From positions 12,958,001 to 13,022,000 of the forward strand of contig OZ059894.1 in assembly GCA_964057225.1 (NCBI GenBank): a stretch of 64,000 nucleotides of DNA, in the 5' to 3' direction. The DNA is from Auanema rhodensis. Taxonomy: Eukaryota; Animalia; Nematoda. Shown piece after piece: positions 16,262-43,700 of this stretch. Each line of letters starts with the position of its first letter. The stretch's first letter is position 1. A model generated the notes under the pieces. It worked only from the letters and a program-made list of their open reading frames with translations. It did no database searches and was not told the DNA's origin. The translations under genes were made by a program, and so were the position numbers.

Positions 16262-16474
16262 TTTCTTAAATTTTCCTATTTTATGAAGTAAAATTTTAAT
16301 TATATCCCATGTCTTAAGCTATTTATTTTCCAAATAACATATCTTCTCGGTAATCAATAAAACAAAAATTAACAGAAATCAACAGTATTTCGTAACACAT
16401 TGTAAAATGAGCGTATCATTACCCGTGGTGCTAACCAGTAATGACACGCCCCCTAACTAACACATAAACATCAG
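16262..16474 (-). repeat. Copy 1 right (3') ITR (16300-16474) plus 38-bp right extension (16262-16299)
   Basis: 16300-16474 is the reverse complement of 20536-20710. The extension TTTCTTAAATTTTCCTATTTTATGAAGTAAAATTTTAA is mirrored in the ICR. Confidence 0.93.
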
Positions 16475-16692
16475 AGTCAAAAAAATATAAACTTCACAAT
16501 GTAACAAGGTATAATACATCAAAACAAAAGAAACAATAAAATCACTTCTTCATTTTACTGTTGTTTCTATTAAAAGGTTTTACAGGTATTGAGTTCGAAG
16601 ACGACCATCTACTGCAATAACATAAACATTTTTTTCAAGCTGAATATAAAAGAGGGATGGTGAACACACACAGGGGATGGTGGAGGGAAGTC

Positions 16693-16768
16693 AGACATGG
16701 GATATAATTAAAATTTTACTTCATAAAATAGGAAAATTTAAGAAATTATATCCCATGTCTTAAGCTAT
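16693..16768 (-). repeat. Copy 1 internal complementary region (ICR)
   Basis: AGACATGGGATATAATTAAAA...TTTAAGAAA|TTATATCCCATGTCTTAAGCTAT joins the element's right and left termini. It lies just past the YR stop codon. Confidence 0.93.
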
Positions 16769-16771
16769 CTT

Positions 16772-19746: not shown

Positions 19747-19755
19747 GGCCTGAGC

Positions 19756-19798
19756 CTGTAAAACAAATAATATAAGGTTAAAAGGCGGAGTGACTTAC
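19756..19798 (-). other. Predicted 43-nt spliceosomal intron joining gag and pol (copy 1)
   Basis: Reverse complement of GTAAGT...TTTTAAC...TTTGTTTTACAG, identical to the copy 2 intron. Confidence 0.75.
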
Positions 19799-20503: not shown

Positions 20504-20535
20504 AGCGACCGATCAGCGTATGTCGGAAAATAAAA

Positions 20536-20710
20536 CTGATGTTTATGTGTTAGTTAGGGGGCGTGTCATTACTGGTTAGCACCACGGGTAATGATACGCT
20601 CATTTTACAATGTGTTACGAAATACTGTTGATTTCTGTTAATTTTTGTTTTATTGATTACCGAGAAGATATGTTATTTGGAAAATAAATAGCTTAAGACA
20701 TGGGATATAA
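20536..20710 (-). repeat. Copy 1 left (5') ITR, 175 bp
   Basis: CTGATGTTTATGTG...GACATGGGATATAA, an inverted match to 16300-16474. Confidence 0.94.
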
Positions 20711-23700
20711 TATAAAATATTTTCATGTTTTATTTTTTTAGTATCAGAAAATTCAAATTAAGATCGTTTTTAATGTTTCAAATCTTAATGAACGAATGAA
20801 TTGTTTCAAAACTATTGTAAAAATATGAGATTGTTTCAAAATACGTGATTAAATGAAGAAAATGGAGTAAAATGAATTGGAAAATTATAAAATATTTTCA
20901 TTTTTTATTTCTTGAGTATCAAAATATTCAAAATTATATCTTTTTTACTGTTAAAAACATTATTAACTGGATGATTTGTTTGGAAATTATTGTAAAAATA
21001 TGAGATTGTTTCAAAATACGTGATTAAATGAAGAAAATGGAGCAAAATGAATTGGAAAATTATAAAATATTTTCATGTTTTATTTCTTGAGTATCAAAAT
21101 ATTTAAACTTTTTTTTTTCACTGTTTAAAATCTTACAGAACGAATGAATTGTTTCAAAACTATTGTAAAAATTTGAGATTGTTTCAAAATTTGTGATTAA
21201 ATGAAGAAAATGGAGTAAAATGAATTGGAAAATTATAAAATATTTCCATGTTTTATTTTCTTAGTATCAGAAAATTCAAATTAAGATCGTTTTTAATGTT
21301 TCAAATCTTAATGAACGAATGAATTGTTTCAAAACTATTGTAAAAATATGAGATTGTTTCAAAATACGTGATTAAATGAAGAAAATGGAGTAAAATGAAT
21401 TGGAAAATTATAAAATATTTTCATGTTTTATTTCTTGAGTTTCAAAATATTCAAACTTTTTTTTTTCACTGTTTAAAATCTTAATGAACGAATGAATTGT
21501 TTCAAAACTATTGTAAAAATATGAGATTGTTTTAAAATACGTGATTAAATGAAGAAAATGGAGTAAAATGAATTGGAAAATTATAAAATATTTCCATGTT
21601 TTATTTTTTTAGTATCAGAAAATTCAAATTAAGATCGTTTTTAATGTTTCAAATCTCAATGAACGAATGAATTGTTTCAAAACTATTGTAAAAATATGAG
21701 ATTGTTTCAAAATACGTGATTAAATGAAGAAAATGGAGCAAAATGAATTGGAAAATTATAAAATATTTTCATGTTTTATTTCTTGAGTATCAAAATATTT
21801 AAACTTTTTTTTTTCACTGTTTAAAATCTTAATGAACGAATGAATTGTTTCAAAACTATTGTAAAAATATGAGATTGTTTCAAAATACGTGATTAAATGA
21901 AGAAAATGGAGTAAAATGAATTGGAAAATTATAAAATATTTTCATGTTTTATTTCTTGAGTTTCAAAATATTCAAACTTTTTTTTTTCACTGTTTAAAAT
22001 CTTACAGAACGAATGAATTGTTTCAAAACTATTGTAAAAATTTGAGATTGTTTCAAAATACGTGATTAAATGAAGAAAATGGAGTAAAATGAATTGGAAA
22101 ATTATAAAATATTTCCATGTTTTATTTTCTTAGTATCAGAAAATTCGAATTAAGATCGTTTTCAATGTTTCAAATCTTAATGAACGAATTAATTGTTTCA
22201 AAACTATTGTAAAAATATGAGATTGTTTCAAAATACGTGATTAAATGAAGAAAATGGAGTAAAATGAATTGGAAAATTATAAAATATTTCCATGTTTTAT
22301 TTTTTTAGTATCAGAAAATTCAAATTAAGATCGTTTTTAATGTTTCAAATCTCAATGAACGAATGAATTGTTTCAAAACTATTGTAAAAATATGAGATTG
22401 TTTCAAAATACGTGATTAAATGAAGAAAATGGAGTAAAATGAATTGGAAAATTATAAAATATTTTCATGTTTTATTTCTTGAGTTTCAAAATATTCAAAC
22501 TTTTTTTTTTCACTGTTTAAAATCTTAATGAACGAATGAATTGTTTCAAAACTATTGTAAAAATATGAGATTGTTTCAAAATACGTGATTAAATGAAGAA
22601 AATGGAGTAAAATGAATTGGAAAATTATAAAATATTTCCATGTTTTATTTTCTTAGTATCAGAAAATTCAAATTAAGATCGTTTTCAATGTTTCAAATCT
22701 TAATGAACGAATTAATCGTTTCAAAACTATTGTAAAAATATGAGATTGTTTCAAAATACGTGATTAAATGAAGAAAATAGAGTAAAATGAATTGGAATAT
22801 TATGAAATATTTTCATGTTTTATTTCTTGAGTATCAAAATATTCAAACTTTTTTTTTTCACTGTTTAAAATCTTAATGAACGAATGAATTGTTTCAAAAC
22901 TATTGTAAAAATATGAGATTGTTTCAAAATACGTGATTAAATGAAGGAAATGGAGTAAAATGAATTGGAAAATTATAAAATATTTTCATGTTTTATTTCT
23001 TGAGTTTCAAAATATTCAAACTTTTTTTTTTCACTGTTTAAAATCTTAATGAACGAATGAATTGTTTCAAAACTATTGTAAAAATTTGAGATTGTTTCAA
23101 AATACGTGATTAAATGAAGAAAATGGAGTAAAATGAATTGGAAAATTATAAAATATTTCCATGTTTTATTTTTTTAGTATCAGAAAATTCAAATTAAGAT
23201 CGTTTTTAATGTTTCAAATCTCAATGAACGAATGAATTGTTTCAAAACTATTGTAAAAATATGAGATTGTTTCAAAATACGTGATTAAATGAAGAAAATG
23301 GAGTAAAATGAATTGGAAAATTATAAAATATTTTCATGTTTTATTTCTTGAGTTTCAAAATATTCAAACTTTTTTTTTTCACTGTTTAAAATCTTAATGA
23401 ACGAATGAATTGTTTCAAAACTATTGTAAAAATTTGAGATTGTTTCAAAATACGTGATTTAATGAAGAAAATAGAGTAAAATGAATTGGAAAATTATAAA
23501 ATATTTTCATGTTTTATTTTTTTAGTATCAGAAAATTCAAATTAAGATCGTTTTTAATGTTTCAAATCTTAATGAACGAATGAATTGTTTCAAAACTATT
23601 GTAAAAATATGAGATTGTTTCAAAATACGTGATTAAATGAAGAAAATGGAGTAAAATGAATTGGAAAATTATAAAATATTTTCATTTTTTATTTCTTGAG

Positions 23701-26700
23701 TATCAAAATATTCAAAATTATATCTTTTTTACTGTTAAAAACATTATTAACTGGATGATTTGTTTGGAAATTATTGTAAAAATATGAGATTGTTTCAAAA
23801 TACGTGATTAAATGAAGAAAATGGAGCAAAATGAATTGGAAAATTATAAAATATTTCCATGTTTTATTTTCTTAGTATCAGAAAATTCAAATTAAGATCG
23901 TTTTTAATGTTTCAAATCTTAATGAACGAATGAATTGTTTCAAAACTATTGTAAAAATATGAGATTGTTTCAAAATACGTGATTAAATGAAGAAAATGGA
24001 GTAAAATGAATTGGAAAATTATAAAATATTTTCATTTTTTATTTCTTGAGTATCAAAATATTCAAAATTATATCTTTTTTACTGTTAAAAACATTATTAA
24101 CTGGATGATTTGTTTGGAAATTATTGTAAAAATATGAGATTGTTTCAAAATACGTGATTAAATGAAGAAAATGGAGCAAAATGAATTGGAAAATTATAAA
24201 ATATTTCCATGTTTTATTTTCTTAGTATCAGAAAATTCAAATTAAGATCGTTTTTAATGTTTCAAATCTTAATGAACGAATGAATTGTTTCAAAACTATT
24301 GTAAAAATATGAGATTGTTTCAAAATACGTGATTAAATGAAGAAAATGGAGTAAAATGAATTGGAAAATTATAAAATATTTTCATTTTTTATTTCTTGAG
24401 TATCAAAATATTCAAAATTATATCTTTTTTACTGTTAAAAACATTATTAACTGGATGATTTGTTTGGAAATTATTGTAAAAATATGAGATTGTTTCAAAA
24501 TACGTGATTAAATGAAGAAAATGGAGCAAAATGAATTGGAAAATTATAAAATATTTCCATGTTTTATTTTCTTAGTATCAGAAAATTCAAATTAAGATCG
24601 TTTTTAATGTTTCAAATCTTAATGAACGAATGAATTGTTTCAAAACTATTGTAAAAATATGAGATTGTTTCAAAATACGTGATTAAATGAAGAAAATGGA
24701 GTAAAATGAATTGGAAAATTATAAAACATTTCCATGTTTTATTTTCTTAGTATCAGAAAATTCAAATTAAGATCGTTTTTAATGTTTCAAATCTTAATGA
24801 ACGAATGAATTGTTTCAAAACTATTGTAAAAATATGAGATTGTTTCAAAATACGTGATTAAATGAAGAAAATGGAGTAAAATGAATTGGAAAATTATAAA
24901 ATATTTTCATTTTTTATTTCTTGAGTATCAAAATATTCAAAATTATATCTTTTTTACTGTTAAAAACATTATTAACTGGATGATTTGTTTGGAAATTATT
25001 GTAAAAATATGAGATTGTTTCAAAATACGTGATTAAATGAAGAAAATGGAGCAAAATGAATTGGAAAATTATAAAATATTTCCATGTTTTATTTTCTTAG
25101 TATCAGAAAATTCAAATTAAGATCGTTTTTAATGTTTCAAATCTTAATGAACGAATGAATTGTTTCAAAACTATTGTAAAAATATGAGATTGTTTCAAAA
25201 TACGTGATTAAATGAAGAAAATGGAGTAAAATGAATTGGAAAATTATAAAATATTTTCATTTTTTATTTCTTGAGTATCAAAATATTCAAAATTATATCT
25301 TTTTTACTGTTAAAAACATTATTAACTGGATGATTTGTTTGGAAATTATTGTAAAAATATGAGATTGTTTCAAAATACGTGATTAAATGAAGAAAATGGA
25401 GCAAAATGAATTGGAAAATTATAAAATATTTCCATGTTTTATTTTCTTAGTATCAGAAAATTCAAATTAAGATCGTTTTTAATGTTTCAAATCTTAATGA
25501 ACGAATGAATTGTTTCAAAACTATTGTAAAAATATGAGATTGTTTCAAAATACGTGATTAAATGAAGAAAATGGAGTAAAATGAATTGGAAAATTATAAA
25601 ATATTTTCATTTTTTATTTCTTGAGTATCAAAATATTCAAAATTATATCTTTTTTACTGTTAAAAACATTATTAACTGGATGATTTGTTTGGAAATTATT
25701 GTAAAAATATGAGATTGTTTCAAAATACGTGATTAAATGAAGAAAATGGAGCAAAATGAATTGGAAAATTATAAAATATTTCCATGTTTTATTTTCTTAG
25801 TATCAGAAAATTCAAATTAAGATCGTTTTTAATGTTTCAAATCTTAATGAACGAATGAATTGTTTCAAAACTATTGTAAAAATATGAGATTGTTTCAAAA
25901 TACGTGATTAAATGAAGAAAATGGAGTAAAATGAATTGGAAAATTATAAAACATTTCCATGTTTTATTTTCTTAGTATCAGAAAATTCAAATTAAGATCG
26001 TTTTTAATGTTTCAAATCTTAATGAACGAATGAATTGTTTCAAAACTATTGTAAAAATATGAGATTAATTCAAAATACGTGATTAAATGAAGAAAATGGA
26101 GTAAAATGAATTGGAAAATTATAAAATATTTTCATGTTTTATTTCTTGAGTTTCAAAATATTCAAACTTTTTTTTTTCACTGTTTAAAATCTTAATGAAC
26201 GAATGAATTGTTTCAAAACTATTGTAAAAATATGAGATTGTTTCAAAATACGTGATTAAATGAAGAAAATGGAGTAAAATGAATTGGAAAATTATAAAAT
26301 ATTTTCATGTTTTATTTCTTGAGTTTCAAAATATTCAAACTTTTTTTTTTCACTGTTTAAAATCTTAATTAACGAATGAATTGTTTCAAAACTATTGTAA
26401 AAATATGAGATTGTTTCAAAATACGTGATTAAATGAAGAAAATGGAGTAAAATGAATTGGAAAATTATAAAATATTTCCATGTTTTATTTTTTTAGTATC
26501 AGAAAATTCAAATTAAGATCGTTTTTAATGTTTCAAATCTCAATGAACGAATGAATTGTTTCAAAACTATTGTAAAAATATGAGATTGTTTCAAAATACG
26601 TGATTAAATGAAGAAAATGGAGTAAAATGAATTGGAAAATTATAAAATATTTTCATGTTTTATTTCTTGAGTTTCAAAATATTCAAACTTTTTTTTTTCA

Positions 26701-29700
26701 CTGTTTAAAATCTTAATTAACGAATGAATTGTTTCAAAACTATTGTAAAAATATGAGATTGTTTCAAAATACGTGATTAAATGAAGAAAATGGAGTAAAA
26801 TGAATTGGAAAATTATAAAATATTTCCATGTTTTATTTTTTTAGTATCAGAAAATTCAAATTAAGATCGTTTTTAATGTTTCAAATCTCAATGAACGAAT
26901 GAATTGTTTCAAAACTATTGTAAAAATATGAGATTGTTTCAAAATACGTGATTAAATGAAGAAAATGGAGCAAAATGAATTTGAAAATTATAAAATATTT
27001 TCATGTTTTATTTCTTGAGTATCAAAATATTTAAACTTTTTTTTTTCACTGTTTAAAATCTTAATGAACGAATGAATTGTTTCAAAACTATTGTAAAAAT
27101 ATGAGATTGTTTCAAAATACGTGATTAAATGAAGAAAATGGAGTAAAATGAATTGGAAAATTATAAAATATTTTCATGTTTTATTTCTTGAGTTTCAAAA
27201 TATTCAAACTTTTTTTTTTCACTGTTTAAAATCTTACAGAACGAATGAATTGTTTCAAAACTATTGTAAAAATTTGAGATTGTTTCAAAATACGTGATTA
27301 AATGAAGAAAATGGAGTAAAATGAATTGGAAAATTATAAAATATTTCCATGTTTTATTTTCTTAGTATCAGAAAATTCAAATTAAGATCGTTTTTAATGT
27401 TTCAAATCTTAATGAACGAATGAATTGTTTCAAAACTATTGTAAAAATATGAGATTGTTTCAAAATACGTGATTAAATGAAGAAAATGGAGTAAAATGAA
27501 TTGGAAAATTATAAAATATTTCCATGTTTTATTTTTTTAGTATCAGAAAATTCAAATTAAGATCGTTTTTAATGTTTCAAATCTCAATGAACGAATGAAT
27601 TGTTTCAAAACTATTGTAAAAATATGAGATTAATTCAAAATACGTGATTAAATGAAGAAAATGGAGTAAAATGAATTGGAAAATTATAAAATATTTTCAT
27701 GTTTTATTTCTTGAGTTTCAAAATATTCAAACTTTTTTTTTTCACTGTTTAAAATCTTAATGAACGAATGAATTGTTTCAAAACTATTGTAAAAATATGA
27801 GATTGTTTCAAAATACGTGATTAAATGAAGAAAATGGAGTAAAATGAATTGGAAAATTATAAAATATTTCCATGTTTTATTTTTTTAGTATCAGAAAATT
27901 CAAATTAAGATCGTTTTTAATGTTTCAAATCTCAATGAACGAATGAATTGTTTCAAAACTATTGTAAAAATATGAGATTAATTCAAAATACGTGATTAAA
28001 TGAAGAAAATGGAGTAAAATGAATTGGAAAATTATGAAATATTTTCATGTTTTATTTCTTGAGTATCAAAATATTCAAACTTTTTTTTTTCACTGTTTAA
28101 AATCTTAATGAACGAATGAATTGTTTCAAAACTATTGTAAAAATATGAGATTAATTCAAAATACGTGATTAAATGAAGAAAATGGAGTAAAATGAATTGG
28201 AAAATTATAAAATATTTTCATGTTTTATTTCTTGAGTTTCAAAATATTCAAACTTTTTTTTTTCACTGTTTAAAATCTTAATGAACGAATGAATTGTTTC
28301 AAAACTATTGTAAAAATATGAGATTGTTTCAAAATACGTGATTAAATGAAGAAAATGGAGTAAAATGAATTGGAAAATTATAAAATATTTTCATGTTTTA
28401 TTTCTTGAGTTTCAAAATATTCAAACTTTTTTTTTTCACTGTTTAAAATCTTACAGAACGAATGAATTGTTTCAAAACTATTGTAAAAATTTGAGATTGT
28501 TTCAAAATACGTGATTAAATGAAGAAAATAGAGTAAAATGAATTGGAAAATTATAAAATATTTCCATGTTTTATTTTCTTAGTATCAGAAAATTCAAATT
28601 AAGATCGTTTCTAATGTTTCAAATCTTAATGAACGAATTAATTGTTTCAAAACTATTGTAAAAATATGAGATTGTTTCAAAATACGTGATTAAATGAAGA
28701 AAATAGAGTAAAATGAATTGGAATATTATAAAATATTTTCATGTTTTATTTCTTGAGTATCAAAATATTCAAACTTTTTTTTTTCACTGTTTAAAATCTT
28801 AATGAACGAATGAATTGTTTCAAAACTATTGTAAAAATTTGAGATTGTTTCAAAATACGTGATTAAATGAAGAAAATAGAGTAAAATGAATTGGAAAATT
28901 ATAAAATATTTTCATGTTTTATTTTTTGAGTATCAAAATAATTAAAATTATATCTACTTTACTGTTAAAAACATTATTAACTGGATGATTTGTTTCGAAA
29001 TTATTGTAAAATTTAAAATTGTTCCAAGAAACATGATTAAATGAAGAAAATAGAGTAAAATGAATTGGAAAATTTTAAAATATTTTCATGTTTTATTTTT
29101 TGAGTATCAAAATATTTGAAATTATATCTTCTTTACTGTTAAAAACATTATTAAATGAATGATTTGTTTCAAAATTATTGTAAAAATTTAAAATTGTTCC
29201 AAGAAACATGATTAAATGAAGAAAATAGAGTAAAATGAATTGGAAAATTATAAAATATTTTCATGTTTTATTTCTTGAGTATCAAAATATTCAAACTTTT
29301 TTTTTCACTGTTTAAAATCTTAATGAACGAATGAATTGTTTCAAAACTATTGTAAAAATTTGAGATTGTTTCAAAATACGTGATTAAATGAAGAAAATGG
29401 AATAAAATGAATTGGAAAATTATAAAATATTTCCATGTTTTATTTTCTTAGTATCAGAAAATTCAATTTAAGATCGTTTTTAATGTTTCAAATCTTAATG
29501 AACGAATGAATTGTTTCAAAACTATTGTAAAAATATGAGATTGTTTCAAAATACGTGATTAAATGAAGGAAATGGAGTAAAATGAATTGGAAAATTATAA
29601 AATATTTTCATGTTTTATTTCTTGAGTTTCAAAATATTCAAACTTTTTTTTTCACTGTTTAAAATCTTAATGAACGAATGAATTGTTTCAAAACTATTGT

Positions 29701-32700
29701 AAAAATATGAGATAAATTCAAAATACGTGATTAAATGAAGAAAATGGAGTAAAATGAATTGGAAAATTATAAAATATTTTCATGTTTTATTTCTTGAGTT
29801 TCAAAATATTCAAACTTTTTTTTTTCACTGTTTGAAATCTTAATGAACGAATGAATTGTTTCAAAACTATAGTAAAAATATGAGATTGTTTCAAAATACG
29901 TGATTAAATGAAGAAAATGGAGTAAAATGAATTGGAAAATTATAAAATATTTTCATGTTTTATTTCTTGAGTTTCAAAATATTCAAACTTTTTTTTTTCA
30001 CTGTTTAAAATCTTAATGAACGAATGAATTGTTTCAAAACTATTGTAAAAATATGAGATTGTTTCAAAATACGTGATTAAATGAAGGAAATGGAGTAAAA
30101 TGAATTGGAAAATTATAAAATATTTTCATGTTTTATTTCTTGAGTTTCAAAATATTCAAACTTTTTTTTTCACTGTTTAAAATCTTAATGAACGAATGAA
30201 TTGTTTCAAAACTATTGTAAAAATATGAGATAAATTCAAAATACGTGATTAAATGAAGAAAATGGAGTAAAATGAATTGGAAAATTATAAAATATTTTCA
30301 TGTTTTATTTCTTGAGTTTCAAAATATTCAAACTTTTTTTTTTCACTGTTTAAAATCTTAATGAACGAATGAATTGTTTCAAAACTATTGTAAAAATATG
30401 AGATTGTTTCAAAATACGTGATTAAATGAAGAAAATGGAGTAAAATGAATTGGAAAATTATAAAATATTTCCATGTTTTATTTTTTTAGTATCAGAAAAT
30501 TCAAATTAAGATCGTTTTTAATGTTTCAAATCTCAATGAACGAATGAATTGTTTCAAAACTATTGTAAAAATATGAGATTGTTTCAAAATACGTGATTAA
30601 ATGAAGAAAATGGAGCAAAATGAATTGGAAAATTATAAAATATTTTCATGTTTTATTTCTTGAGTATCAAAATATTTAAACTTTTTTTTTTCACTGTTTA
30701 AAATCTTACAGAACGAATGAATTGTTTCAAAACTATTGTGAAAATTTGAGATTGTTTCAAAATACGTGATTAAATGAAGAAAATGGAGTAAAATGAATTG
30801 GAAAATTATAAAATATTTCCATGTTTTATTTTCTTAGTATCAGAAAATTCAAATTAAGATCGTTTTCAATGTTTCAAATCTTAATGAACGAATTAATCGT
30901 TTCAAAACTATTGTAAAAATATGAGATTGTTTCAAAATACGTGATTAAATGAAGAAAATAGAGTAAAATGAATTGGAATATTATAAAATATTTTCATGTT
31001 TTATTTCTTGAGTTTCAAAATATTCGAACTTTTTTTTTCACTGTTTAAAATCTTAATGAACGAATGAATTGTTTCAAAACTATTGTAAAAATATGAGATT
31101 GTTTCAAAATACGTGATTAAATGAAGGAAATGGAGTAAAATGAATTGGAAAATTATAAAATATTTTCATGTTTTATTTCTTGAGTTTCAAAATATTCAAA
31201 CTTTTTTTTTCACTGTTTAAAATCTTAATGAACGAATGAATTGTTTCAAAACTATTGTAAAAATTTGAGATTGTTTCAAAATACGTGATTAAATGAAGAA
31301 AATGGAGTAAAATGAATTGGAAAATTATAAAATATTTCCATGTTTTATTTTTTTAGTATCAGAAAATTCAAATTAAGATCGTTTTTAATGTTTCAAATCT
31401 CAATGAACGAATGAATTGTTTCAAAACTATTGTAAAAATATGAGATTGTTTCAAAATACGTGATTAAATGAAGAAAATGGAGTAAAATGAATTGGAAAAT
31501 TATAAAATATTTTCATGTTTTATTTCTTGAGTTTCAAAATATTCAAACTTTTTTTTTTCACTGTTTAAAATCTTAATGAACGAATGAATTGTTTCAAAAC
31601 TATTGTAAAAATTTGAGATTGTTTCAAAATACGTGATTAAATGAAGAAAATGGAGTAAAATGAATTGGAAAATTATAAAATATTTCCATGTTTTATTTTT
31701 TTAGTATCAGAAAATTCAAATTAAGATCGTTTTTAATGTTTCAAATCTCAATGAACGAATGAATTGTTTCAAAACTATTGTAAAAATATGAGATTGTTTC
31801 AAAATACGTGATTAAATGAAGAAAATGAAGTAAAATGAATTGGAAAATTATAAAATATTTTCATGTTTTATTTCTTGAGTTTCAAAATATTCAAACTTTT
31901 TTTTTTCACTGTTTAAAATCTTAATGAACGAATGAATTGTTTCAAAACTATTGTAAAAATTTGAGATTGTTTCAAAATACGTGATTTAATGAAGAAAATA
32001 GAGTAAAATGAATATAGAAAATTATAAAATATTTTCATGTTTTTTTTTTTGAGTATCAAAATAATTAAAATTATATCTACTTTACTGTTAAAAACATTAT
32101 TAACTGGATGATTTGTTTCGAAATTATTGTAAAATTTAAAATTGTTCCGAGAAACATGATTAAATGAAGAAAATAGAGTAAAATGAATTGGAAAATTTTA
32201 AAATATTTTCATGTTTTATTTTTTGAGTATCAAAATATTTAAAATTATATCTTCTTTACTGTTAAAAACATTATTAAATGAATGATTTGTTTCGAAATTA
32301 TTGTAAAAATTTAAAATTGTTCCAAGAAACATGATTAAATGAAGAAAATGGAGTAAAATGAATTGGAAAATTTTAAAATATTTTCATGTTTTATTTTTTG
32401 AGTATCAAAATATTCAAACTTTTTTTTTCACTGTTTAAAATCTTAATGAACGAATGAATTGTTTCAAAACTATTGTAAAAATTTGAGATTGTTTCAAAAT
32501 ACGTGATTAAATGAAGAAAATGGAATAAAATGAATTGGAAAATTATAAAATATTTCCATGTTTTATTTTCTTAGTATCAGAAAATTCAAATTAAGATCGT
32601 TTTTAATGTTTAAAATCTTAATGAACGAATGAATTGTTTCAAAACTATTGTAAAAATATGAGATTGTTTCAAAATACGTGATTAAATGAAGAAAATAGAG

Positions 32701-35700
32701 TAAAATGAATTGGAAAATTATAAAATATTTTCATGTTTTATTTCTTGAGTATCAAAATATTCAAAATTATATCTTTTTTACTGTTAAAAACATTATTAAC
32801 TGGATGATTTGTTTCAAAACTATTGTAAAAATATGAGATTGTTTCAAAATACGTGATCAAATGAAGAAAATGGAGTAAAATGAATTGGAAAATTATAAAA
32901 TATTTTCATGTTTTATTTCTTGAGTATCAAAATATTTAAACTTTTTTTTTTCACTGTTTAAAATCTTACAGAACGAATGAATTGTTTCAAAACTATTGTA
33001 AAAATTTGAGATTGTTTCAAAATACGTGATTAAATGAAGAAAATGGAGTAAAATGAATTAGAAAATTATAAAATATTTCCATGTTTTATTTTCTTATTAT
33101 CAGAAAATTCAAATTAAGATCGTTTTTAATGTTTCAAATCTTAATGAACGAATGAATTGTTTCAAAACTATTGTAAAAATATGAGATTGTTTCAAAATAC
33201 GTGATTAAATGAAGAAAATGGAGTAAAATGAATTGGAAAAATATAAAATATTTTCATGTTTTATTTCTTGAGTTTCAAAATATTCAAACTTTTTTTTTTC
33301 ACTGTTTAAAATCTTAATGAACGAATGAATTGTTTCAAAACTATTGTAAAAATTTGAGATTGTTTCAAAATACGTGATTAAATGAAGAAAATAGAGTAAA
33401 ATGAATTGGAAAATTATAAAATATTTTCATGTTTTATTTTTTGAGTATCAAAATATTTGAAATTATAACTTCTTTACTGTTAAAAACATTATTAACTGGA
33501 TGATTTGTTTCGAAATTATTGTAAAAATTTAAAATTGTTCCAAGAAACATGATTAAATGAAGAAAATAGAGTAAAATGAATTGGAAAATTATAAAATATT
33601 TTCATGTTTTATTTTTTATTTTTTGAGTATCAAAATAATTAAAATTATATCTACTTTACTGTTAAAAACATTATTAACTGGATGATTTGTTTCGAAATTA
33701 TTGTAAAATTTAAAATTGTTCCAAGAAACATGATTAAATGAAGAAAATAGAGTAAAATGAATTGGAAAATTTTAAAATATTTTCATGTTTTATTTCTTGA
33801 GTATCAAAATATTCAAACTTTTTTTTTCACTGTTTAAAATCTTAATGAACGAATGATTTGTTTCGAAATTATTGTAAAATTTAAAATTGTTCCAAGAAAC
33901 ATGATTAAATGAAGAAAATAGAGTAAAATGAATTGGAAAATTTTAAAATATTTTCATGTTTTATTTTTTGAGTATCAAAATATTTAAAATTATATCTTCT
34001 TTACTGTTAAAAACATTATTAAATGAATGATTTGTTTCGAAATTATTGTAAAAATTTAAAATTGTTCCAAGAAACATGATTAAATGAAGAAAATAGAGTA
34101 AAATGAATTGGAAAATTATAAAATATTTTCATGTTTTATTTCTTGAGTATCAAAATATTCAAACTTTTTTTTTCACTGTTTAAAATCTTAATGAACGAAT
34201 GATTTGTTTCGAAATTATTGTAAAATTTAAAATTGTTCCAAGAAACATGATTAAATGAAGAAAATAGAGTAAAATGAATTGGAAAATTTTAAAATATTTT
34301 CATGTTTTATTTTTTGAGTATCAAAATATTTAAAATTATATCTTCTTTACTGTTAAAAACATTATTAAATGAATGATTTGTTTCGAAATTATTGTAAAAA
34401 TTTAAAATTGTTCCAAGAAACATGATTAAATGAAGAAAATGGAATAAAATGAATTGGAAAATTATAAAATATTTCCATGTTTTATTTCTTGAGTATCAAA
34501 ATATTCAAAATTATATCTTTTTTACTGTTAAAAACATTATTAACTGGATGATTTGTTACGAAATTATTGCAAAAATATGAGATTGTTTCAAAATACGTGA
34601 TTAAATGAAGAAAATGGAGTAAAATGAATTGGAAAATTATAAAATATTTTCCTGTTTTATTTCTTGAGTTTCAAAATATTCAAACTTTTTTTTTTCACTG
34701 TTTAAAATCTTAATGAACGAATGAATTGTTTCAAAACTATTGTAAAAATATGAGATTGTTTCAAAATACGTGATTAAATGAAGAAAATAGAGTAAAATGA
34801 ATTGGAATATTATAAAATATTTTCATGTTTTATTTCTTGAGTATCAAAATACTCAAACTTTTTTTTTTCACTGTTTAAAATCTTAATGAACGAATGAATT
34901 GTTTCAAAACTATTGTAAAAATATGAGATTGTTTCAAAATACGTGATTAAATAAAGAAAATGGAGTAAAATGAATTGGAAAATTATAAAATATTTTCATG
35001 TTTTATTTCTTGAGTTTCAAAATATTCAAACTTTTTTTTTTCACTGTTTAAAATCTTAATGAACGAATGAATTGTTTCAAAACTATTGTAAAAATATGAG
35101 ATTGTTTCAAAATACGTGATTAAATGAAGAAAATGGAGTAAAATGAATTGGAAAATTATAAAATATTTCCATGTTTTATTTTCTTAGTATCAGAAAATTC
35201 AAATTAAGATCGTTTTTAATGTTTCAAATCTCAATGAACGAATGAATTGTTTCAAAACTATTGTAAAAATATGAGATTGTTTCAAAATACGTGATTAAAT
35301 GAAGAAAATGGAGTAAAATGAATTGGAAAATTATAAAATATTTCCATGTTTTATTTTCTTATTATCAGAAAATTCAAATTAAGATCGTTTTTAATGTTTC
35401 AAATCTTAATGAACGAATTAATTGTTTCAAAACTATTGTAAAAATATGAGATTGTTTCCAAATACGTGATTAAATGAAGAAAATAGAGTAAAATGAATTG
35501 GAAAATTATAAAATATATCCATGTTTTATTTTTTTTTTTCTTTTTTTTTTCAACTTTTTTTTTTCACTGTTTAAAATCTTAATGAACGAATGAATTGTTT
35601 CAAAACTATTGTAAAAATTTGAGATTGTTTCAAAATACGTGATTAAATGAAGAAAATGGAGTAAAATGAATTGGAAAATTATAAAATATTTCCATGTTTC

Positions 35701-36320
35701 ATTTTTTTAGTATCAGAAAATTCAAATTAAGATCGTTTTTAATGTTTCAAATCTCAATGAACGAATGAATTGTTTCAAAACTATTCTAAAAATATGAGAT
35801 TGTTTCAAAATACGTGATTAAATGAAGAAAATGGAGTAAAATGAATTGGAAAATTATAAAATATTTTCATGTTTTATTTCTTGAGTTTCAAAATATTCAA
35901 ACTTTTTTTTTTCACTGTTTAAAATCTTAATGAACGAATGAATTGTTTCAAAACTATTGTAAAAATTTGAGATTGTTTCAAAATACGTGATTAAATGAAG
36001 AAAATAGAGTAAAATGAATTGGAAAATTATAAAATATTTTCATGTTTTATTTTTTGAGTATCAAAATAATTAAAATTATATCTACTTTACTGTTAAAAAC
36101 ATTATTAACTGGATGATTTGTTTCGAAATTATTGTAAAATTTAAAATTGTTCCAAGAAACATGATTAAATGAAGAAAATAGAGTAAAATGAATTGGAAAA
36201 TTTTAAAATATTTTCATGTTTTATTTTTTGAGTATCAAAATATTTGAAATTATATCTTCTTTACTGTTAAAAACATTATTAAATGAATGATTTGTTTCAA
36301 AATTATTGTAAAAATTTAAA
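20711..36320. repeat. Satellite array, segment 2 (A/B/C, with divergent D-type monomers from about 28.9 kb)
   Basis: Same monomer and orientation as segment 1. D-type monomers carry TTTCGAAATTATTGTAAAA(A)TTTAAAATTGTTCCAAGAAACATG. Confidence 0.98.
23580..26030. repeat. Nested local expansion: (C-A dimer x3 + A) x2, with periods of 350 bp and 1225 bp
   Basis: C markers near 23715, 24065, 24415, 24940, 25290 and 25640. The AAAACATTTCC variant has its C at 24727 and 25952. Confidence 0.85.
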
Positions 36321-36495
36321 TTATATCCCATGTCTTAAGCTATTTATTTTCCAAATAACATATCTTCTCGGTAATCAATAAAACAAAAATTAACAGAAAT
36401 CAACAGTATTTCGTAACACATTGTAAAATGAGCGTATCATTGCCCGTGGTGCTAACCAGTAATGACACGCCCCCTAACTAACACATAAACATCAG
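36321..36495 (+). repeat. Copy 2 left (5') ITR, 175 bp
   Basis: TTATATCCCATGTC...CATAAACATCAG is the reverse complement of 40557-40731. Confidence 0.94.
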
Positions 36496-36527
36496 TTTTA
36501 TTTTCCGACATACGCTGATCGGTCGCT

Positions 36528-37253
36528 ATGCCGTCTTCACGGGAACCTTCAACTCCCCGTGATTTGGATTCTTCGTCACATTATTCGCGTTCGCCTTCGC
36601 GAGAGCAAGATATTCGACGTTCACGTTCTAGATCCGTTTCGTCATCTAGATCCTGTTCACTATCTCTCAGGCCTTTTAAGCGTCAGAGGCCTTGTCCTCA
36701 ACCTAGCTCTGTTCCTTTACCTCCTTCAACTCCAGCCTCCAAGGAACGACCGGTTATCTCGCTTGCGGAAGATCTTCTTACTAACTTTGAACATCTCGCA
36801 GCTGGTATTACTCTCCTTCCTTCGGACCGCTCATCACTAATTCAAGAACTCCCTCGCCCGGAATCCATCTTAGCAGATCTCCCGGTGTTGGACTCTAAAC
36901 TTCAAAATCTTTTGGATGGCTCAACGAGATCATTTCATAAAGTATCAGAACAGGAGTTACGAGGACTTTACGAAAACGAGTTACAAGTTTTGAATATCGT
37001 TACTATTATCCGTTTTCTCGGATCCAATGATGAAGGTGGCCCACTTTCTCCGAAAGTTGCTGGTTATCTCTCAATTCTGGAACGCTTTGTCAGTGCAAAT
37101 CTGCGCACTTTCTTAGGAGCAACTCGAGAGCTTGCCCTTCTCAGAATGGGATTCTCTCGCCCTTCACAGAGCATGCCGAACTATCGTAAAGTTGGCCTTA
37201 GTTCGTCTTCCTCCTTTGATACGGTACTAGGAGTAAGTCACTCCGCCTTTTAA
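36528..37253 (+). CDS. gag: Gag-like ORF1 of DIRS copy 2 (241 aa unspliced)
   Basis: ATG 33 bp after the left ITR, in the position typical of DIRS ORF1. Differences from copy 1 are mostly synonymous in this frame. Confidence 0.8.
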   Translation: MPSSREPSTPRDLDSSSHYSRSPSREQDIRRSRSRSVSSSRSCSLSLRPFKRQRPCPQPSSVPLPPSTPASKERPVISLAEDLLTNFEHLAAGITLLPSDRSSLIQELPRPESILADLPVLDSKLQNLLDGSTRSFHKVSEQELRGLYENELQVLNIVTIIRFLGSNDEGGPLSPKVAGYLSILERFVSANLRTFLGATRELALLRMGFSRPSQSMPNYRKVGLSSSSSFDTVLGVSHSAF

Positions 37254-37275
37254 CCTTATATTATTTGTTTTACAG
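37233..37275 (+). other. Predicted 43-nt spliceosomal intron joining gag and pol (copy 2)
   Basis: GGA|GTAAGT donor, TTTTAAC branch-like motif and T-rich tract ending TTTTACAG|GCT. Phase 0, and removal puts gag in frame with pol. Confidence 0.75.
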
Positions 37276-37284
37276 GCTCAGGCC

Positions 37285-39339
37285 GTGGAACTGTTTGGGC
37301 GAGCACTGCGAGCCGAACTGAGAAAACCTAACGAGGTTATGAAACACCGCTCGGAGCAATCTCAACGTCGTGTGGTACCATCGGACCGTAGACACACTGT
37401 TAATAGGAAAACTACTTCCCGCTCTGTTGCTCAACGTACGAAGTTAGTTCCCTCCTTTTCTGCACGTTCATTAGCCAATCATTGTTCATTTTGGTTTTCT
37501 ATTTCGTCTGATTTGTTCATTTTGCAATCAGTTATTAATTATCGTTTACCATTTAACGGTTCTCTACCTCCTTTGAGTAATTTTGATTCCTCGCTTAATC
37601 ACTCGGTCTCTTCAAGAAACCTTGACTTATTGATAGTGGATATGCTGTCAGAAGGCACCATTAGACCTATTCAAAAAAATGAAAAGGTATTCTTATCCCC
37701 TGCTTTTGTTGTGCCCAAGAAAGATGGAGAGTTTCGCTTTATTTTGAATCTGAGACGACTCAATTCATATCTGCAGGACCTTCCCTTCAAGCTAGAATCA
37801 ATTAAAGATGTATCACTATTGATACAACCATCGGATTGGTTAGCTAAAATAGATTTCTCGTCTGCATATCATGCTGTTCCTATTGATCCAGAACATCAAC
37901 CTTTCCTAGCTTTTCGAGCTGGAGGTTCTGGTTATGTTTTTCAAGCCATGCCATTTGGCCTTAGTTCAGCTCCATTCACTTTTCATAAGATCGTTAGAGT
38001 CCTTGCTTCGTATTTACGAAGTAAAGGAGTTCGCATTATTAACTATCTAGACGATTGGCTGTTTATTGGGTCATCTGTCACTCAAGTACAAGAGCATATT
38101 CAGTTAGCCTTGTGTTTATTCAAGCAATCTGGTTTCTCAGTTAACCACACTAAGTCCATTTTAATCCCTACTCAAAGAATAGAATTTCTGGGAATCAATC
38201 TAAATGCCCAGGAAGGTACATGGTCAATACCAGTATCAAAGTTAGATCGCATTCAAAATGCATTAGATCGGGTAAATAAACCAGACGCCACATTAAGATG
38301 TTTTGCATCCCTGTTGGGCTTATTGAACTTTACTGCTATTGTTCATCCCGAAATCAGTTTTTTCGTTCACTCTCTCCAACGTGCGCTAGGTGTGGTATCC
38401 TTGAAAGCTCTCTCTTCTTCTTTACACATTAACGAAAAGTTAAATAGATCGCGAGATTTGGACATAATATTTCCTCAAGTTAAATTTATCTTGGAAACTG
38501 TAATGCATCTGCCTGTTTCGTTTTGTCCGTTTTCACCTTCGATAACTATAACATCCGACGCTTCCTTGCGAGGATATGGAGGTTGTATGGACGGTCAACA
38601 AATTTCCGGAATCTGGTCTATTGAAGAAAAGAAACTTCATATTAACTGGAGAGAACTGAGCGCTGCTTATAAAGCGGTTTCCTTCTTCCTCAAATCTAAA
38701 AGTTACGTAGACGTGACCTTACTTCTTGATAACATGTCGGCTATTGCTTATATTAACAAACGAGGAGGCACTCGTTCGGCTGAAGGCTCAGATATAGCCT
38801 TAAAGTTATGGGAATTTTGCACTGTCCGCGGTATCAGAATAAAAGCTTCTCATATTCCGGGACGACAAAATATTTCCGCCGACAAGTTATCGAGAGGACA
38901 GTTCTTAGATAGTGAGGAGTGGTCCTTACATGATGAAATCATTAAAGAAATATTCCTTGAATGGGGAACACCTAACATTGATCTATTTGCTTCTTCAAAT
39001 AATTTCAAATTAGATAGATATATTTCATACCTTCCAGACCCGGGAGCTTGCTTTATCAACTCCTTTGCCGTAAATTGGGCAGAAGTATCACAAGGATACG
39101 CTTACATTTTCCCTCCATTTTCAATGGTGGGGAAAGCAATAGCAAAGATTGTTCGAGATCGATGCAAAGCAATCTTAATAGCTCCGAACTGGACAAGTCA
39201 ATATTGGTTCCCTACATTAAAGAAAATTCACAAGGAAGTACGGGTATTACAACACCCTTACCTTTTACGGAACCCAGTGGGAGAAGTTCACCCACTGTTG
39301 AAGAGCCACAACTTCCAGCTCTTAGCATGGAGAATTTGA
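37285..39339 (+). CDS. pol: Pol (reverse transcriptase, RNase H, Dam-like methyltransferase domain) of DIRS copy 2
   Basis: YLDD RT motif, RNase H motifs DAS/REL/DN/AD, and MT motifs DLFAS and FPPF, as expected for DIRS1-group pol. Confidence 0.96.
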   Translation: MELFGRALRAELRKPNEVMKHRSEQSQRRVVPSDRRHTVNRKTTSRSVAQRTKLVPSFSARSLANHCSFWFSISSDLFILQSVINYRLPFNGSLPPLSNFDSSLNHSVSSRNLDLLIVDMLSEGTIRPIQKNEKVFLSPAFVVPKKDGEFRFILNLRRLNSYLQDLPFKLESIKDVSLLIQPSDWLAKIDFSSAYHAVPIDPEHQPFLAFRAGGSGYVFQAMPFGLSSAPFTFHKIVRVLASYLRSKGVRIINYLDDWLFIGSSVTQVQEHIQLALCLFKQSGFSVNHTKSILIPTQRIEFLGINLNAQEGTWSIPVSKLDRIQNALDRVNKPDATLRCFASLLGLLNFTAIVHPEISFFVHSLQRALGVVSLKALSSSLHINEKLNRSRDLDIIFPQVKFILETVMHLPVSFCPFSPSITITSDASLRGYGGCMDGQQISGIWSIEEKKLHINWRELSAAYKAVSFFLKSKSYVDVTLLLDNMSAIAYINKRGGTRSAEGSDIALKLWEFCTVRGIRIKASHIPGRQNISADKLSRGQFLDSEEWSLHDEIIKEIFLEWGTPNIDLFASSNNFKLDRYISYLPDPGACFINSFAVNWAEVSQGYAYIFPPFSMVGKAIAKIVRDRCKAILIAPNWTSQYWFPTLKKIHKEVRVLQHPYLLRNPVGEVHPLLKSHNFQLLAWRI

Positions 39340-40259
39340 CTGGCCTAATTCCTGATATATCTAATGATACCATGTCTCTATTCTTAAACTCCTGGGCTGC
39401 AGGAACTCGTAAGCAATATAATTCAGCTCTTAAAAAGTGGGAAATTTATTGTGCATCTCACAAAATTTCTATTACTCCCTCTCCTTCAACCGCTGCAGAT
39501 TTTTTGTCATCTATGTTTAACGACAAAGCCGTTTCAACAGTTTTGGGCTATAAATCCGCACTTTGTGCTTTAGCTGACTTTCTGAAAATTAGTCCCCCTC
39601 TTCGGGATAACCCATTACTTAGTAGAATATCTAGGGGAGCGTTCAGATTAAAACCTCCACAACCTAAATATATAGATTCTTGGGAACCTTCCATTGTTCT
39701 TTCATATTTAGAAAGTCTGGGGCCCAACAACGAATTATCGTTGGAACTACTAACCAAAAAATTAGCAATGCTATTAGCTTTATGCTCCCCAAAACGAGTG
39801 TCAGAAATAGCGCAGTTCTCTATAGACCATGTTCAATTCAATGATAACGGTGTTACGTTTTTCATAAATTATAGAAATAAAAATAGAAAAGCGGGAATAC
39901 CTCATAAAGCTACCTATGAGATTTCTTTAGACAGACCGTTACTCTGTCCGGTAGCATGTATTAAAGCATATTTAGACAAAACTGAGTCTAAACGGCTTTC
40001 AAATAATTTACTGATATCCATCTCACAAGGAACGAGTATTACAAGTACAACAGTAGCTCGGTGGATAAGGGATATTTTATCGTTGGCAAAAATACCGCAT
40101 AGATTTTCTGCGCACTCTACCCGTCACGCTTCTACTTCGTCAGCTTTTAAAAAAGGGGTTCCATTGAAAACTATAATGAGTGCCGCAAATTGGAAATCCG
40201 ACACTTCATTTTTCAAACACTACTGCAGAACCAGATCCTTTCAAGCTGCAATTTTTTGA
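39048..40259 (+). CDS. Tyrosine recombinase (YR) of DIRS copy 2; probable ATG at 39162 or 39327; overlaps the pol 3' end
   Basis: R...K...HSTR...W...HY catalytic set of lambda-integrase-family recombinases. Confidence 0.93.
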   Translation: MLYQLLCRKLGRSITRIRLHFPSIFNGGESNSKDCSRSMQSNLNSSELDKSILVPYIKENSQGSTGITTPLPFTEPSGRSSPTVEEPQLPALSMENLTGLIPDISNDTMSLFLNSWAAGTRKQYNSALKKWEIYCASHKISITPSPSTAADFLSSMFNDKAVSTVLGYKSALCALADFLKISPPLRDNPLLSRISRGAFRLKPPQPKYIDSWEPSIVLSYLESLGPNNELSLELLTKKLAMLLALCSPKRVSEIAQFSIDHVQFNDNGVTFFINYRNKNRKAGIPHKATYEISLDRPLLCPVACIKAYLDKTESKRLSNNLLISISQGTSITSTTVARWIRDILSLAKIPHRFSAHSTRHASTSSAFKKGVPLKTIMSAANWKSDTSFFKHYCRTRSFQAAIF

Positions 40260-40262
40260 AAG

Positions 40263-40338
40263 ATAGCTTAAGACATGGGATATAATTTCTTAAATTTTCC
40301 TATTTTATGAAGTAAAATTTTAATTATATCCCATGTCT
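40263..40338 (+). repeat. Copy 2 internal complementary region (ICR), 76 bp
   Basis: 40263-40285 is complementary to the first 23 nt of the left ITR. 40286-40338 is complementary to the last 53 nt of the element. Confidence 0.93.
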
Positions 40339-40556
40339 GACTTCCCTCCACCATCCCCTGTGTGTGTTCACCATCCCTCTTTTATATTCAGCTTGAAAAA
40401 AATGTTTATGTTATTGCAGTAGATGGTCGTCTTCGAACTCAATACCTGTAAAACCTTTTAATAGAAACAACAGTAAAATGAAGAAGTGATTTTATTGTTT
40501 CTTTTGTTTTGATGTTATATACCTTGTTACATTGTGAAGTTTATATTTTTTTGACT

Positions 40557-40769
40557 CTGATGTTTATGTGTTAGTTAGGGGGCGTGTCATTACTGGTTAG
40601 CACCACGGGCAATGATACGCTCATTTTACAATGTGTTACGAAATACTGTTGATTTCTGTTAATTTTTGTTTTATTGATTACCGAGAAGATATGTTATTTG
40701 GAAAATAAATAGCTTAAGACATGGGATATAATTAAAATTTTACTTCATAAAATAGGAAAATTTAAGAAA
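40557..40769 (+). repeat. Copy 2 right (3') ITR (40557-40731) plus right extension (40732-40769)
   Basis: Inverted copy of the left ITR followed by TTAAAATTTTACTTCATAAAATAGGAAAATTTAAGAAA. Confidence 0.93.
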
Positions 40770-43700
40770 ATTGTTCCAAGAAACATGATTAAATGAAGAA
40801 AATAGAGTAAAATGAATTGGAAAATTATAAAATATTTTCATGTTTTATTTCTTGAGTATCAAAATATTCAAATTAAGATCGTTTTTAATGTTTCAAATCT
40901 CAATGAACGAATGAATTGTTTCAAAACTATTGTAAAAATATGAGATTGTTTCAAAATACGTGATTAAATGAAGAAAATGGAGTAAAATGAATTGGAAAAT
41001 TATAAAATATTTTCATGTTTTATTTCTTGAGTTTCAAAATATTCAAACTTTTTTTTTTCACTGTTTAAAATCTTAATGAACGAATGAATTGTTTCAAAAC
41101 TATTGTAAAAATTTGAGATTGTTTCAAAATACGTGATTTAATGAAGAAAATAGAGTAAAATGAATTGGAAAATTATAAAATATTTTCATGTTTTATTTTT
41201 TTAGTATCAGAAAATTCAAATTAAGATCGTTTTTAATGTTTCAAATCTCAATGAACGAATGAATTGTTTCAAAACTATTGTAAAAATATGAGATTGTTTC
41301 AAAATACGTGATTAAATGAAGAAAATGGAGTAAAATGAATTGGAAAATTATAAAATATTTTCATGTTTTATTTCTTGAGTTTCAAAATATTCAAACTTTT
41401 TTTTTTCACTGTTTAAAATCTTAATGAACGAATGAATTGTTTCAAAACTATTGTAAAAATATGAGATTGTTTCAAAATACGTGATTAAATGAAGAAAATG
41501 GAGTAAAATGAATTGGAAAATTATAAAATATTTCCATGTTTTATTTTCTTAGTATCAGAAAATTCAAATTAAGATCGTTTTCAATGTTTCAAATCTTAAT
41601 GAACGAATTAATCGTTTCAAAACTATTGTAAAAATATGAGATTGTTTCAAAATACGTGATTAAATGAAGAAAATAGAGTAAAATGAATTGGAATATTATA
41701 AAATATTTTCATGTTTTATTTCTTGAGTATCAAAATATTCAAACTTTTTTTTTTCACTGTTTAAAATCTTAATGAACGAATGAATTGTTTCAAAACTATT
41801 GTAAAAATATGAGATTGTTTCAAAATACGTGATTAAATGAAGGAAATGGAGTAAAATGAATTGGAAAATTATAAAATATTTTCATGTTTTATTTCTTGAG
41901 TTTCAAAATATTCAAACTTTTTTTTTTCACTGTTTAAAATCTTAATGAACGAATGAATTGTTTCAAAACTATTGTAAAAATTTGAGATTGTTTCAAAATA
42001 CGTGATTAAATGAAGAAAATGGAGTAAAATGAATTGGAAAATTATAAAATATTTCCATGTTTTATTTTTTTAGTATCAGAAAATTCAAATTAAGATCGTT
42101 TTTAATGTTTCAAATCTCAATGAACGAATGATTTGTTTCAAAACTATTGTAAAAATATGAGATTGTTTCAAAATACGTGATTAAATGAAGAAAATGGAGT
42201 AAAATGAATTGGAAAATTATAAAATATTTTCATTTTTTATTTCTTGAGTATCAAAATATTTAAACTTTTTTTTTCACTGTTTAAAATCTTAATGAACGAA
42301 TGAATTGTTTCAAAACTATTGTAAAAATATGAGATTGTTTCAAAATACGTGATTAAATGAAGAAAATGGAGTAAAATGAATTGGAAAATTATAAAATATT
42401 TTCATGTTTTATTTCTTGAGTTTCAAAATATTCAAACTTTTTTTTTTCACTGTTTAAAATCTTACAGAACGAATGAATTGTTTCAAAACTATTGTAAAAA
42501 TTTGAGATTGTTTCAAAATACGTGATTAAATGAAGAAAATGGAGTAAAATGAATTGGAAAATTATAAAATATTTCCATGTTTTATTTTCTTAGTATCAGA
42601 AAATTCGAATTAAGATCGTTTTCAATGTTTCAAATCTTAAAGAACGAATTAATTGTTTCAAAACTATTGTAAAAATATGAGATTGTTTCAAAATACGTGA
42701 TTAAATGAAGAAAATGGAGTAAAATGAATTGGAAAATTATAAAATATTTCCATGTTTTATTTTTTTAGTATCAGAAAATTCAAATTAAGATCGTTTTTAA
42801 TGTTTCAAATCTCAATGAACGAATGAATTGTTTCAAAACTATTGTAAAAATATGAGATTGTTTCAAAATACGTGATTAAATGAAGAAAATGGAGTAAAAT
42901 GAATTGGAAAATTATAAAATATTTCCATGTTTTATTTTTTTAGTATCAGAAAATTCAAATTAAGATTGTTTTTAATGTTTCAAATCTTAATGAACGAATG
43001 AATTGTTTCAAAACTATTGTAAAAATATGAGATTGTTTCAAAATACGTGATTAAATGAAGAAAATGGAGTAAAATGAATTGGAAAATTATAAAATATTTT
43101 CATGTTTTATTTCTTGAGTTTCAAAATATTCAAACTTTTTTTTTTCACTGTTTAAAATCTTAATGAACGAATGAATTGTTTCAAAACTATTGTAAAAATT
43201 TGAGATTGTTTCAAAATACGTGATTTAATGAAGAAAATAGAGTAAAATGAATTGGAAAATTATAAAATATTTTCATGTTTTATTTTTTTAGTATCAGAAA
43301 ATTCAAATTAAGATCGTTTTTAATGTTTCAAATCTTAATGAACGAATGAATTGTTTCAAAACTATTGTAAAAATATGAGATTGTTTCAAAATACGTGATT
43401 AAATGAAGAAAATGGAGTAAAATGAATTGGAAAATTATAAAATATTTTCATTTTTTATTTCTTGAGTATCAAAATATTCAAAATTATATCTTTTTTACTG
43501 TTAAAAACATTATTAACTGGATGATTTGTTTGGAAATTATTGTAAAAATATGAGATTGTTTCAAAATACGTGATTAAATGAAGAAAATGGAGCAAAATGA
43601 ATTGGAAAATTATAAAATATTTCCATGTTTTATTTTCTTAGTATCAGAAAATTCAAATTAAGATCGTTTTTAATGTTTCAAATCTTGATGAACGAATGAA

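Follow-up and report, generated by a model that had tools for sequence, protein, structure and literature searches.

A candidate 43-nt intron at the gag-pol junction of a DIRS1-like retrotransposon, compared across related families in a nematode genome

Retroelements need much Gag and little Pol from one RNA, and the known routes to this are frameshifting, readthrough and the copia type of splicing to a Gag-only message. In Drosophila copia and in the plant Ty1/copia elements EVD and BARE, Gag-Pol is encoded by unspliced RNA, and a Gag-only mRNA arises by splicing (PMC5580714). Ty1 and Ty3, as well as antizyme and RF2, use +1 programmed frameshifting (PMC5009743). The unspliced 8-kb RNA of Cer1, a Ty3/gypsy element of C. 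elegans, encodes a Gag-Pol polyprotein and its spliced 2.4-kb RNA another protein (PMC3315495), and Penelope-like elements retain spliceosomal introns (PMC4209133). DIRS surveys of eukaryotes (PMC3266345), nematodes (PMC4157794) and fungi (PMC3783388) describe separate or overlapping open reading frames (ORFs), and the word "intron" is absent from all three; the 2014 nematode survey placed Dirs1-like elements in Enoplia and Dorylaimia and regarded them as possibly absent from Rhabditida (PMC4157794). Here, we analysed a window of 64,000 nucleotides (nt), meaning the whole stretch of DNA under study, and describe a 43-nt stretch (37233-37275, plus strand) at the gag-pol junction of a DIRS1-like tyrosine-recombinase retrotransposon, termed family A, which resembles a spliceosomal intron and whose removal would fuse gag to pol. 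A literature search found no retrotransposon in which splicing fuses gag to pol, though its coverage was incomplete and this is not proof of absence.

Unspliced, the gag ORF spans 36528-37253, encodes 241 amino acids (aa) and reads ...TVLGVSHSAF across the junction before ending at TAA (37251-37253), so placed that the stop sits inside the 43-nt stretch. The proposed intron, in phase 0, lies just 3′ of the codon GGA (37230-37232), starts with GTAAGT (37233-37238), contains the branch-like TTTTAAC (37248-37254) and closes with a T-rich tract and CAG (37264-37275); its 3′ end is TTTGTTTTACAG, finishing at 37275, and its start-to-end form is GTAAGT...TTTTACAG. The gag exon would then cover 36528-37232 (plus strand; 235 codons, from the ATG to the final codon ahead of the proposed 5′ splice site) and the pol exon 37276-39339 (plus strand), which starts with AQAV-ELFGRALRAEL. 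The pol frame is +1 relative to gag, is open from 37237 and reads ...LQAQAVELFGRALR. Dividing 43 by three leaves one, and excising the stretch joins ...TVLG to AQAVELFG in frame. The resulting fusion of Gag with reverse transcriptase (RT), RNase H and methyltransferase (MT) has 235 + 687 = 922 aa, a length obtained by arithmetic, as gag and pol were handled as separate pieces throughout. A second CAG at 37279-37281, which gives a 49-nt version, likewise preserves the frame. An earlier note on this DNA had proposed this intron; the letters and positions that it gave (GGA, GTAAGT, TTTTAAC, the gag TAA and the end at 37275) proved exact, and both the continuous 922-aa frame and the frame-preserving second CAG are confirmed by the frames and the arithmetic. 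It was also right that pol opens without an ATG, the earliest one in frame being at 37339, and that the stretch recurs in an inverted copy of the element (copy 1), where the same letters stand at 19756-19798 on the minus strand.

Among the described systems, the likeness to copia and Ty1/copia elements lies in a host-type GT-AG intron of host-like size and composition, in isoforms that would encode different protein sets, and in an unspliced RNA that corresponds to the full-length genome. The two differ in that the unspliced frame of family A encodes Gag only and splicing is predicted, from sequence alone, to give Gag-Pol; the frames found here, set beside the published copia scheme (PMC5580714), bear out the view of the earlier note that the logic is the reverse of that in Drosophila copia. 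In addition, the 43-nt family A intron would remove no coding domain, and it resides in a DIRS tyrosine-recombinase element rather than in a long terminal repeat/integrase element. Cer1 is likewise a nematode retrotransposon with consensus splice sites in its coding region, whose full-length RNA must escape splicing, but it has no stop-containing mini-intron at the gag-pol boundary. The genomic copies of Penelope-like elements also keep their intron, the template being unspliced or the intron lying outside the copied part; however, these elements belong to a GIY-YIG/telomerase-like RT class, their intron lies elsewhere than at a gag-pol boundary, and it has not been proposed to switch expression. 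If the proposal for family A is true, the stoichiometry of Gag to Gag-Pol would be set by intron removal and not by recoding, with a polarity opposite to that of copia, and the stretch would be the first intron to be described for the DIRS order. The finding bears on the survival of introns through reverse transcription, on the action of DIRS Pol in trans and on how splicing surveillance and small RNAs in nematodes handle such RNAs. It also concerns annotation, in that gene-prediction and transposon-annotation software would report the gag and pol of family A as separate or broken ORFs.

When the whole 4463-nt element was scanned for GTRRG and a T-rich YAG 36-79 nt apart, the 43-nt stretch was the sole candidate; GTAAGT occurs once in the element, and so does a T-rich CAG. 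Shuffled elements contained 0.92 intron-like candidates anywhere per 4463 nt, and the expected chance of a candidate spanning the gag stop in the correct phase was roughly 0.003. It is therefore unlikely that the stretch arose by chance. The same scan gave no candidate for a further intron that would link pol with the recombinase ORF downstream, and no other strong splice acceptor was seen in family A. The G+C content (GC) of the stretch is 33%, versus 49 and 53% in its flanks. Five host introns from two actin genes are 44-47 nt long, start with GTAxG, end with TTTCAG, TTTAAG or TCTAG and carry a TTACTNAT-like box, and the gaps between further actin-family exon matches indicate the same intron size. 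Since its signals and size are like those of the host actin introns, the 43-nt stretch looks like an ordinary intron of this genome.

The position at which translation enters pol narrows the possible routes to Pol. ELFGRALRAEL lies within the 21 codons from 37276 to 37339 and is conserved in frame both with families of about 45% identity and with relatives from other species. Homology to the latter begins at pol-frame residue 16, two residues past the proposed 3′ splice site, while the 13 pol-frame codons upstream (VTPPFNLILFVLQ) have no homologue. The conservation of ELFG...LRAEL in the pol frame requires that translation enter pol upstream of 37285. Initiation at GTG 37285 or at ATG 37339 was rejected, as the conserved motif lies upstream of or across both; pol initiation at the internal ATG had been named beforehand in the earlier note as a refuter, and it is the conserved upstream motif that opposes it. 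With initiation at 37339 excluded, splicing or a +1 shift within 37237-37253 remain.

The 181-Mb genome was searched for copies and relatives of the element, and four related families (B to E) were found at roughly 40-48% protein identity; the gag of family A is 37-48% identical to the gag parts of B-E. By comparison, the nearest relative in public protein collections is 37% identical. In family A (the window and eight copies in all), the junction reads GGA/GTAAGT...TTTTACAG/GCT, with the gag stop inside the 43 nt and pol in the +1 frame. Family B (L017-L026 and L029; fused ORFs of 897-1033 aa) has 45 nt at this place, GAG/GTAGGA...ATTCTCAG/GAC, family E (L045; a 922-aa ORF) has 45 nt, GAG/GTAAAT...TTTTCTCAG/GAG, and family D (L043 and L044; gag only, the closest to A) has 48 nt, GGA/GTATAC...CTCTTTTCAG/CTT; in all three the stretch is in frame and open. 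The 3′ ends are TCTCAG in B and E and TTTTCAG in D. The stretch of A, B, D and E lies at one shared codon boundary, in phase 0 and exactly 12 nt (four codons) ahead of (E/D)LFG, and its GC is 27-40% versus 41-55% in the flanks. Family C (L027-L038; a 958-aa ORF) lacks the stretch and is colinear with B minus the 45 nt of B: it reads ...DNAPE/DSAPELFG, where B reads ...DNSQE[15 aa]DSVPELFG, so that exactly the stretch of B is missing. Relatives from other species, including a Panagrolaimus protein, share the LFG motif and have no residues at the place of the stretch; three of them (P0001, P0002 and P0004) diverge ahead of the junction, yet have no insert either. The check proposed in the earlier note, on conservation of GT/AG and phase in related families, gave a shared boundary and phase 0 in A, B, D and E and no stretch in C. 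The five families provide a natural series within a single genome, with stop-containing, in-frame and intronless states.

A maximum-likelihood tree of pol had the topology (A,(C,(E,B))), its supports being 100, 98 and 100. Families with the stretch branch on both sides of C in this tree, which calls either for a single gain followed by an exact loss in C or for two gains that hit one and the same nucleotide and phase. An exact loss would be most simply explained as the outcome of reverse transcribing a spliced RNA. The stretches of B and E differ at 12 sites, distributed 3/4/5 over codon positions 1/2/3, whereas the differences in the flanks are distributed 18/6/84 and 116/72/275, which is a coding pattern. 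Together with the diverged family A copy described below, the B-E pattern suggests that the stretch is under relaxed, codon-blind constraint. The length of the stretch in B, E and D is divisible by three, and the gag-pol frame is the only one open through it, for which the chance is about 0.14 for B or E and about 0.09 for D. The likeliest interpretation for these three families is that intron-retaining RNA is also translated, so that the genomic RNA itself could encode Gag-Pol. A stop and a frame shift within the stretch occur in family A alone among the five families, and the comparison points to this state of family A as the derived one. As family C has one fused ORF without the stretch, a separate Gag is not required in the clade.

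Two further observations concern these relatives. L046 (G000:C1:17199500-17206000) was considered as a homologue of the pol-frame residues inside the stretch and was rejected, being a degenerate family B copy in which a deletion extends from the C-terminal end of gag to within the first half of the 45 nt. Family D (G000:C3:5318000-5330000, minus strand) consists of two units at a spacing of 5.2 kb; its gag-only ORF of 347 aa is 48% identical to family A gag over the conserved part and 42% by tblastn over 219 aa; the ORF ends 33 codons past the 48-nt stretch with no pol after it, and a perfect GTAAGT lies 10 nt within the stretch. Family D could be a non-autonomous element or a captured gag.

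All eight family A copies in the genome carry the 43-nt stretch. Seven of them are identical across 500 nt around the junction, and the eighth is about 1.7-3% diverged. This diverged copy has four substitutions in the 43 nt versus about 1.6% elsewhere (binomial P = 0.005), with GT and AG intact and the gag stop changed from TAA to TAG; about half of its coding changes are synonymous.

From these comparisons, it is quite likely that the stretch is a real, inherited intron of the DIRS lineage. We give a rough probability of 0.65 to the more specific reading, that it is a host-type U2 mini-intron whose removal makes the Gag-Pol of family A. According to this reading, the 43-nt mini-intron in the gag-pol linker would be old within the element group and precisely lost in one family. 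Unspliced family A RNA would yield only the 241-aa Gag, and spliced RNA the 922-aa Gag-RT-RNaseH-MT fusion. The unspliced RNA would be the reverse-transcribed template, the sole basis for this step being that all eight copies keep the stretch, and Pol made from the spliced mRNA would act in trans on the unspliced RNA. The model for family A requires such action in trans, of which the RT of DIRS-1 is capable (PMC7192593). The fraction of spliced RNA would set the ratio of Gag to Gag-Pol; we infer that splicing occurs, that both isoforms accumulate and that their ratio matters. A search of RNA runs listed none with the element, and three small runs under the species label gave no contigs, which counts neither for nor against splicing. 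That this fraction acts as a tuned switch between Gag and Gag-Pol is a tentative suggestion, the splicing itself being a prediction. We hold with similar reserve a wider scheme, in which the lineage maintained an intron that is translatable in three families, became an obligatory switch in A and was lost in C, where a spliced copy would have founded an intronless lineage. The Gag/Gag-Pol switch put forward in the earlier note fared accordingly in part: the intron-like nature of the stretch is supported by its signals, GC and position, whereas the in-frame stretches of B, E and D and the fused ORF of C show that a switch is not general to the clade. In family A, the switch is a plausible consequence of the intron rather than an established design.

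Several observations weigh against the intron reading. Reverse transcription of spliced Gag-Pol RNA should be expected to leave some intronless family A copies, and the genome search for them that the earlier note had suggested found none among the eight places. On the tree, two gains are as parsimonious as one gain plus one loss. Identity between B and E is 73% in the stretch versus 73-77% in the flanks, so the stretch has not diverged faster. Families B and D have weak 5′ sites (GTAGGA and GTATAC, respectively), and the open stretch in B, E and D could be read as a variable coding linker, from Val (GTA) to Gln (CAG). Finally, a UUU-UAA-C slip site lies within the stretch, and it underlies the main rival explanation.

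In this rival explanation, Pol is made by +1 programmed ribosomal frameshifting on unspliced RNA. At GCC-UUU-UAA-C (37245-37254, plus strand), the P-site tRNA-Phe could re-pair one base forward on the four-U run before the stop, giving ...SHSAF-NLILFVLQAQAVELFG... As in known +1 systems, pol is in the +1 frame, the overlap is short (the pol frame is open from 37237, 17 nt ahead of the gag stop) and a slippery codon precedes the stop; the heptamer is shaped like the +1 stop-codon sites of RF2, antizyme and Euplotes (AAA-UAA) (PMC5009743), a likeness that is our own reading. Frameshifting would also account, without added assumptions, for the retention of the 43 nt in all copies. In contrast to the known systems, however, the family A site is not conserved: none of the relatives has a stop or shift site at the junction, B, E and D reading through it and C lacking the stretch. 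The segment that a shift would translate, NLILFVLQ, has no homologue and is hydrophobic, whereas the linkers of the relatives are hydrophilic, and under frameshifting all four changes in the stretch of the diverged copy would be non-synonymous or in the stop codon (which remains a stop). Nor does it explain why the overlap lies within a full set of splice signals, with a perfect GTAAGT, a T-rich CAG, a host-like length and a dip in GC, or why C lacks precisely this stretch. We therefore regard frameshifting as unlikely, though it is the strongest of the rivals.

Two other explanations are less probable still. In rhabditid nematodes, to which the host belongs, trans-splice acceptors resemble cis acceptors, and Pol might be made without Gag by spliced leader (SL) trans-splicing at the T-rich CAG ending at 37275, or by internal initiation, with translation starting at ATG 37339. 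This would agree with the first in-frame pol ATG being there, and Cer1 RNA in C. elegans is partly SL1 trans-spliced (PMC3315495). Yet cis-splicing would be expected from the perfect 5′ splice site that lies 43 nt upstream, the conserved ELFGRALRAEL among the 21 codons of 37276-37339 argues that these codons are translated, and the close relatives all make a Gag-Pol fusion, which together make the proposal highly improbable. Scarcely more credible is the explanation that the stretch is a variable coding linker in which family A has suffered a frame-breaking 2-nt change, leaving it without a Pol of its own and spreading by means of the Pol of another family in trans. In its favour, B, E and D do have an open stretch that keeps the frame, the DIRS-1 RT does act in trans, and in seven near-identical A copies an intact pol could reflect youth and not selection. 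Against this, the pol of family A has diverged by about 55% from that of the other families without losing its fully open frame or its domains, which indicates long selection, and the older, 1.7%-diverged copy is already in the 43-nt state with about half of its coding changes synonymous. Nor would a coding linker explain the pattern of splice signals, the lower GC, substitutions that disregard codon position or the fact that C lacks exactly this stretch.

The element that carries the stretch in the window, copy 2 of family A, occupies 36310-40772 on the plus strand as a 4463-nt arm and is 99% identical to copy 1, which lies inverted at 16259-20721 (minus strand; gag 19778-20503, pol 17692-19746, recombinase 16772-17983). 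It has a left inverted terminal repeat (ITR) at 36311-36495 (plus strand; 185 nt, 99% complementary to 40557-40741) and a right ITR with an extension at 40557-40772 (plus strand). An internal complementary region (ICR) at 40263-40338 (plus strand) consists of two adjoining parts, of which 40263-40288 pairs with 36318-36343 at the left end and 40286-40338 with 40717-40769 at the right end. The gag ORF gave no match in a Pfam search. The pol product matched RVT_1 in Pfam (1.9e-22; 80 bits against a cut-off of 29.6) and showed 31-37% identity to DIRS-type proteins that bear RVT_1 and Dam domains. Its RT lies at about 37711-38202 and is followed by RNase H and by a Dam-like MT at about 38914-39249; the MT match (PF05869; 9.2e-06, 25.9 bits) is slightly below the curated cut-off of 28.1, and the domain is precomputed in many homologues. 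The tyrosine recombinase (YR) ORF (39048-40259, plus strand; Phage_integrase, 1.5e-13) uses the gag frame, shares 292 nt with pol (39048-39339) and has its first ATG at about 39162. In none of the three ORFs of the element did Pfam find an integrase or protease family. This architecture of ITRs, ICR, gag, RT-RNaseH with a putative MT and an overlapping YR is that of a DIRS1-like tyrosine-recombinase retrotransposon, as in DIRS-1 of Dictyostelium and DIRS1-like elements. Structurally complete Dirs1-like elements with ITR and ICR, of at least four autonomous families, are thus present in this rhabditid genome. A 430-aa HSP70 ORF encoded in it shares 88% and 86% identity with proteins of Auanema sp. 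JU1783 and 81% with Caenorhabditis proteins, which places the host among the rhabditid nematodes.

Outside both elements (1-16258, 20722-36309 and 40773-64000), the window consists of an AT-rich satellite of 173/175-nt units with a 348-nt higher-order unit, in which the two DIRS copies lie in opposite orientation with 15.6 kb between them. The GC of the element is about 38% versus about 20% in the surrounding satellite. Elsewhere in the genome, the region G000:C3:4967934-4996510 matches the N-terminal part of gag (query residues 5-87, 33% identity) at least ten times in tandem, each match lying in a 129-aa open frame and most being about 1.5-2.9 kb apart; the region is a tandem array derived from a gag fragment. 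Another retroelement, present in many copies (e.g. C6:9841001, C3:4523521 and C5:7570264), has an RT with 31% identity to the DIRS RT in open frames of about 2500-2930 aa. At G000:C5:15313560-15329144, there are five HSP70 copies with identical match scores, four of them in a 3184-nt tandem array and one inverted.

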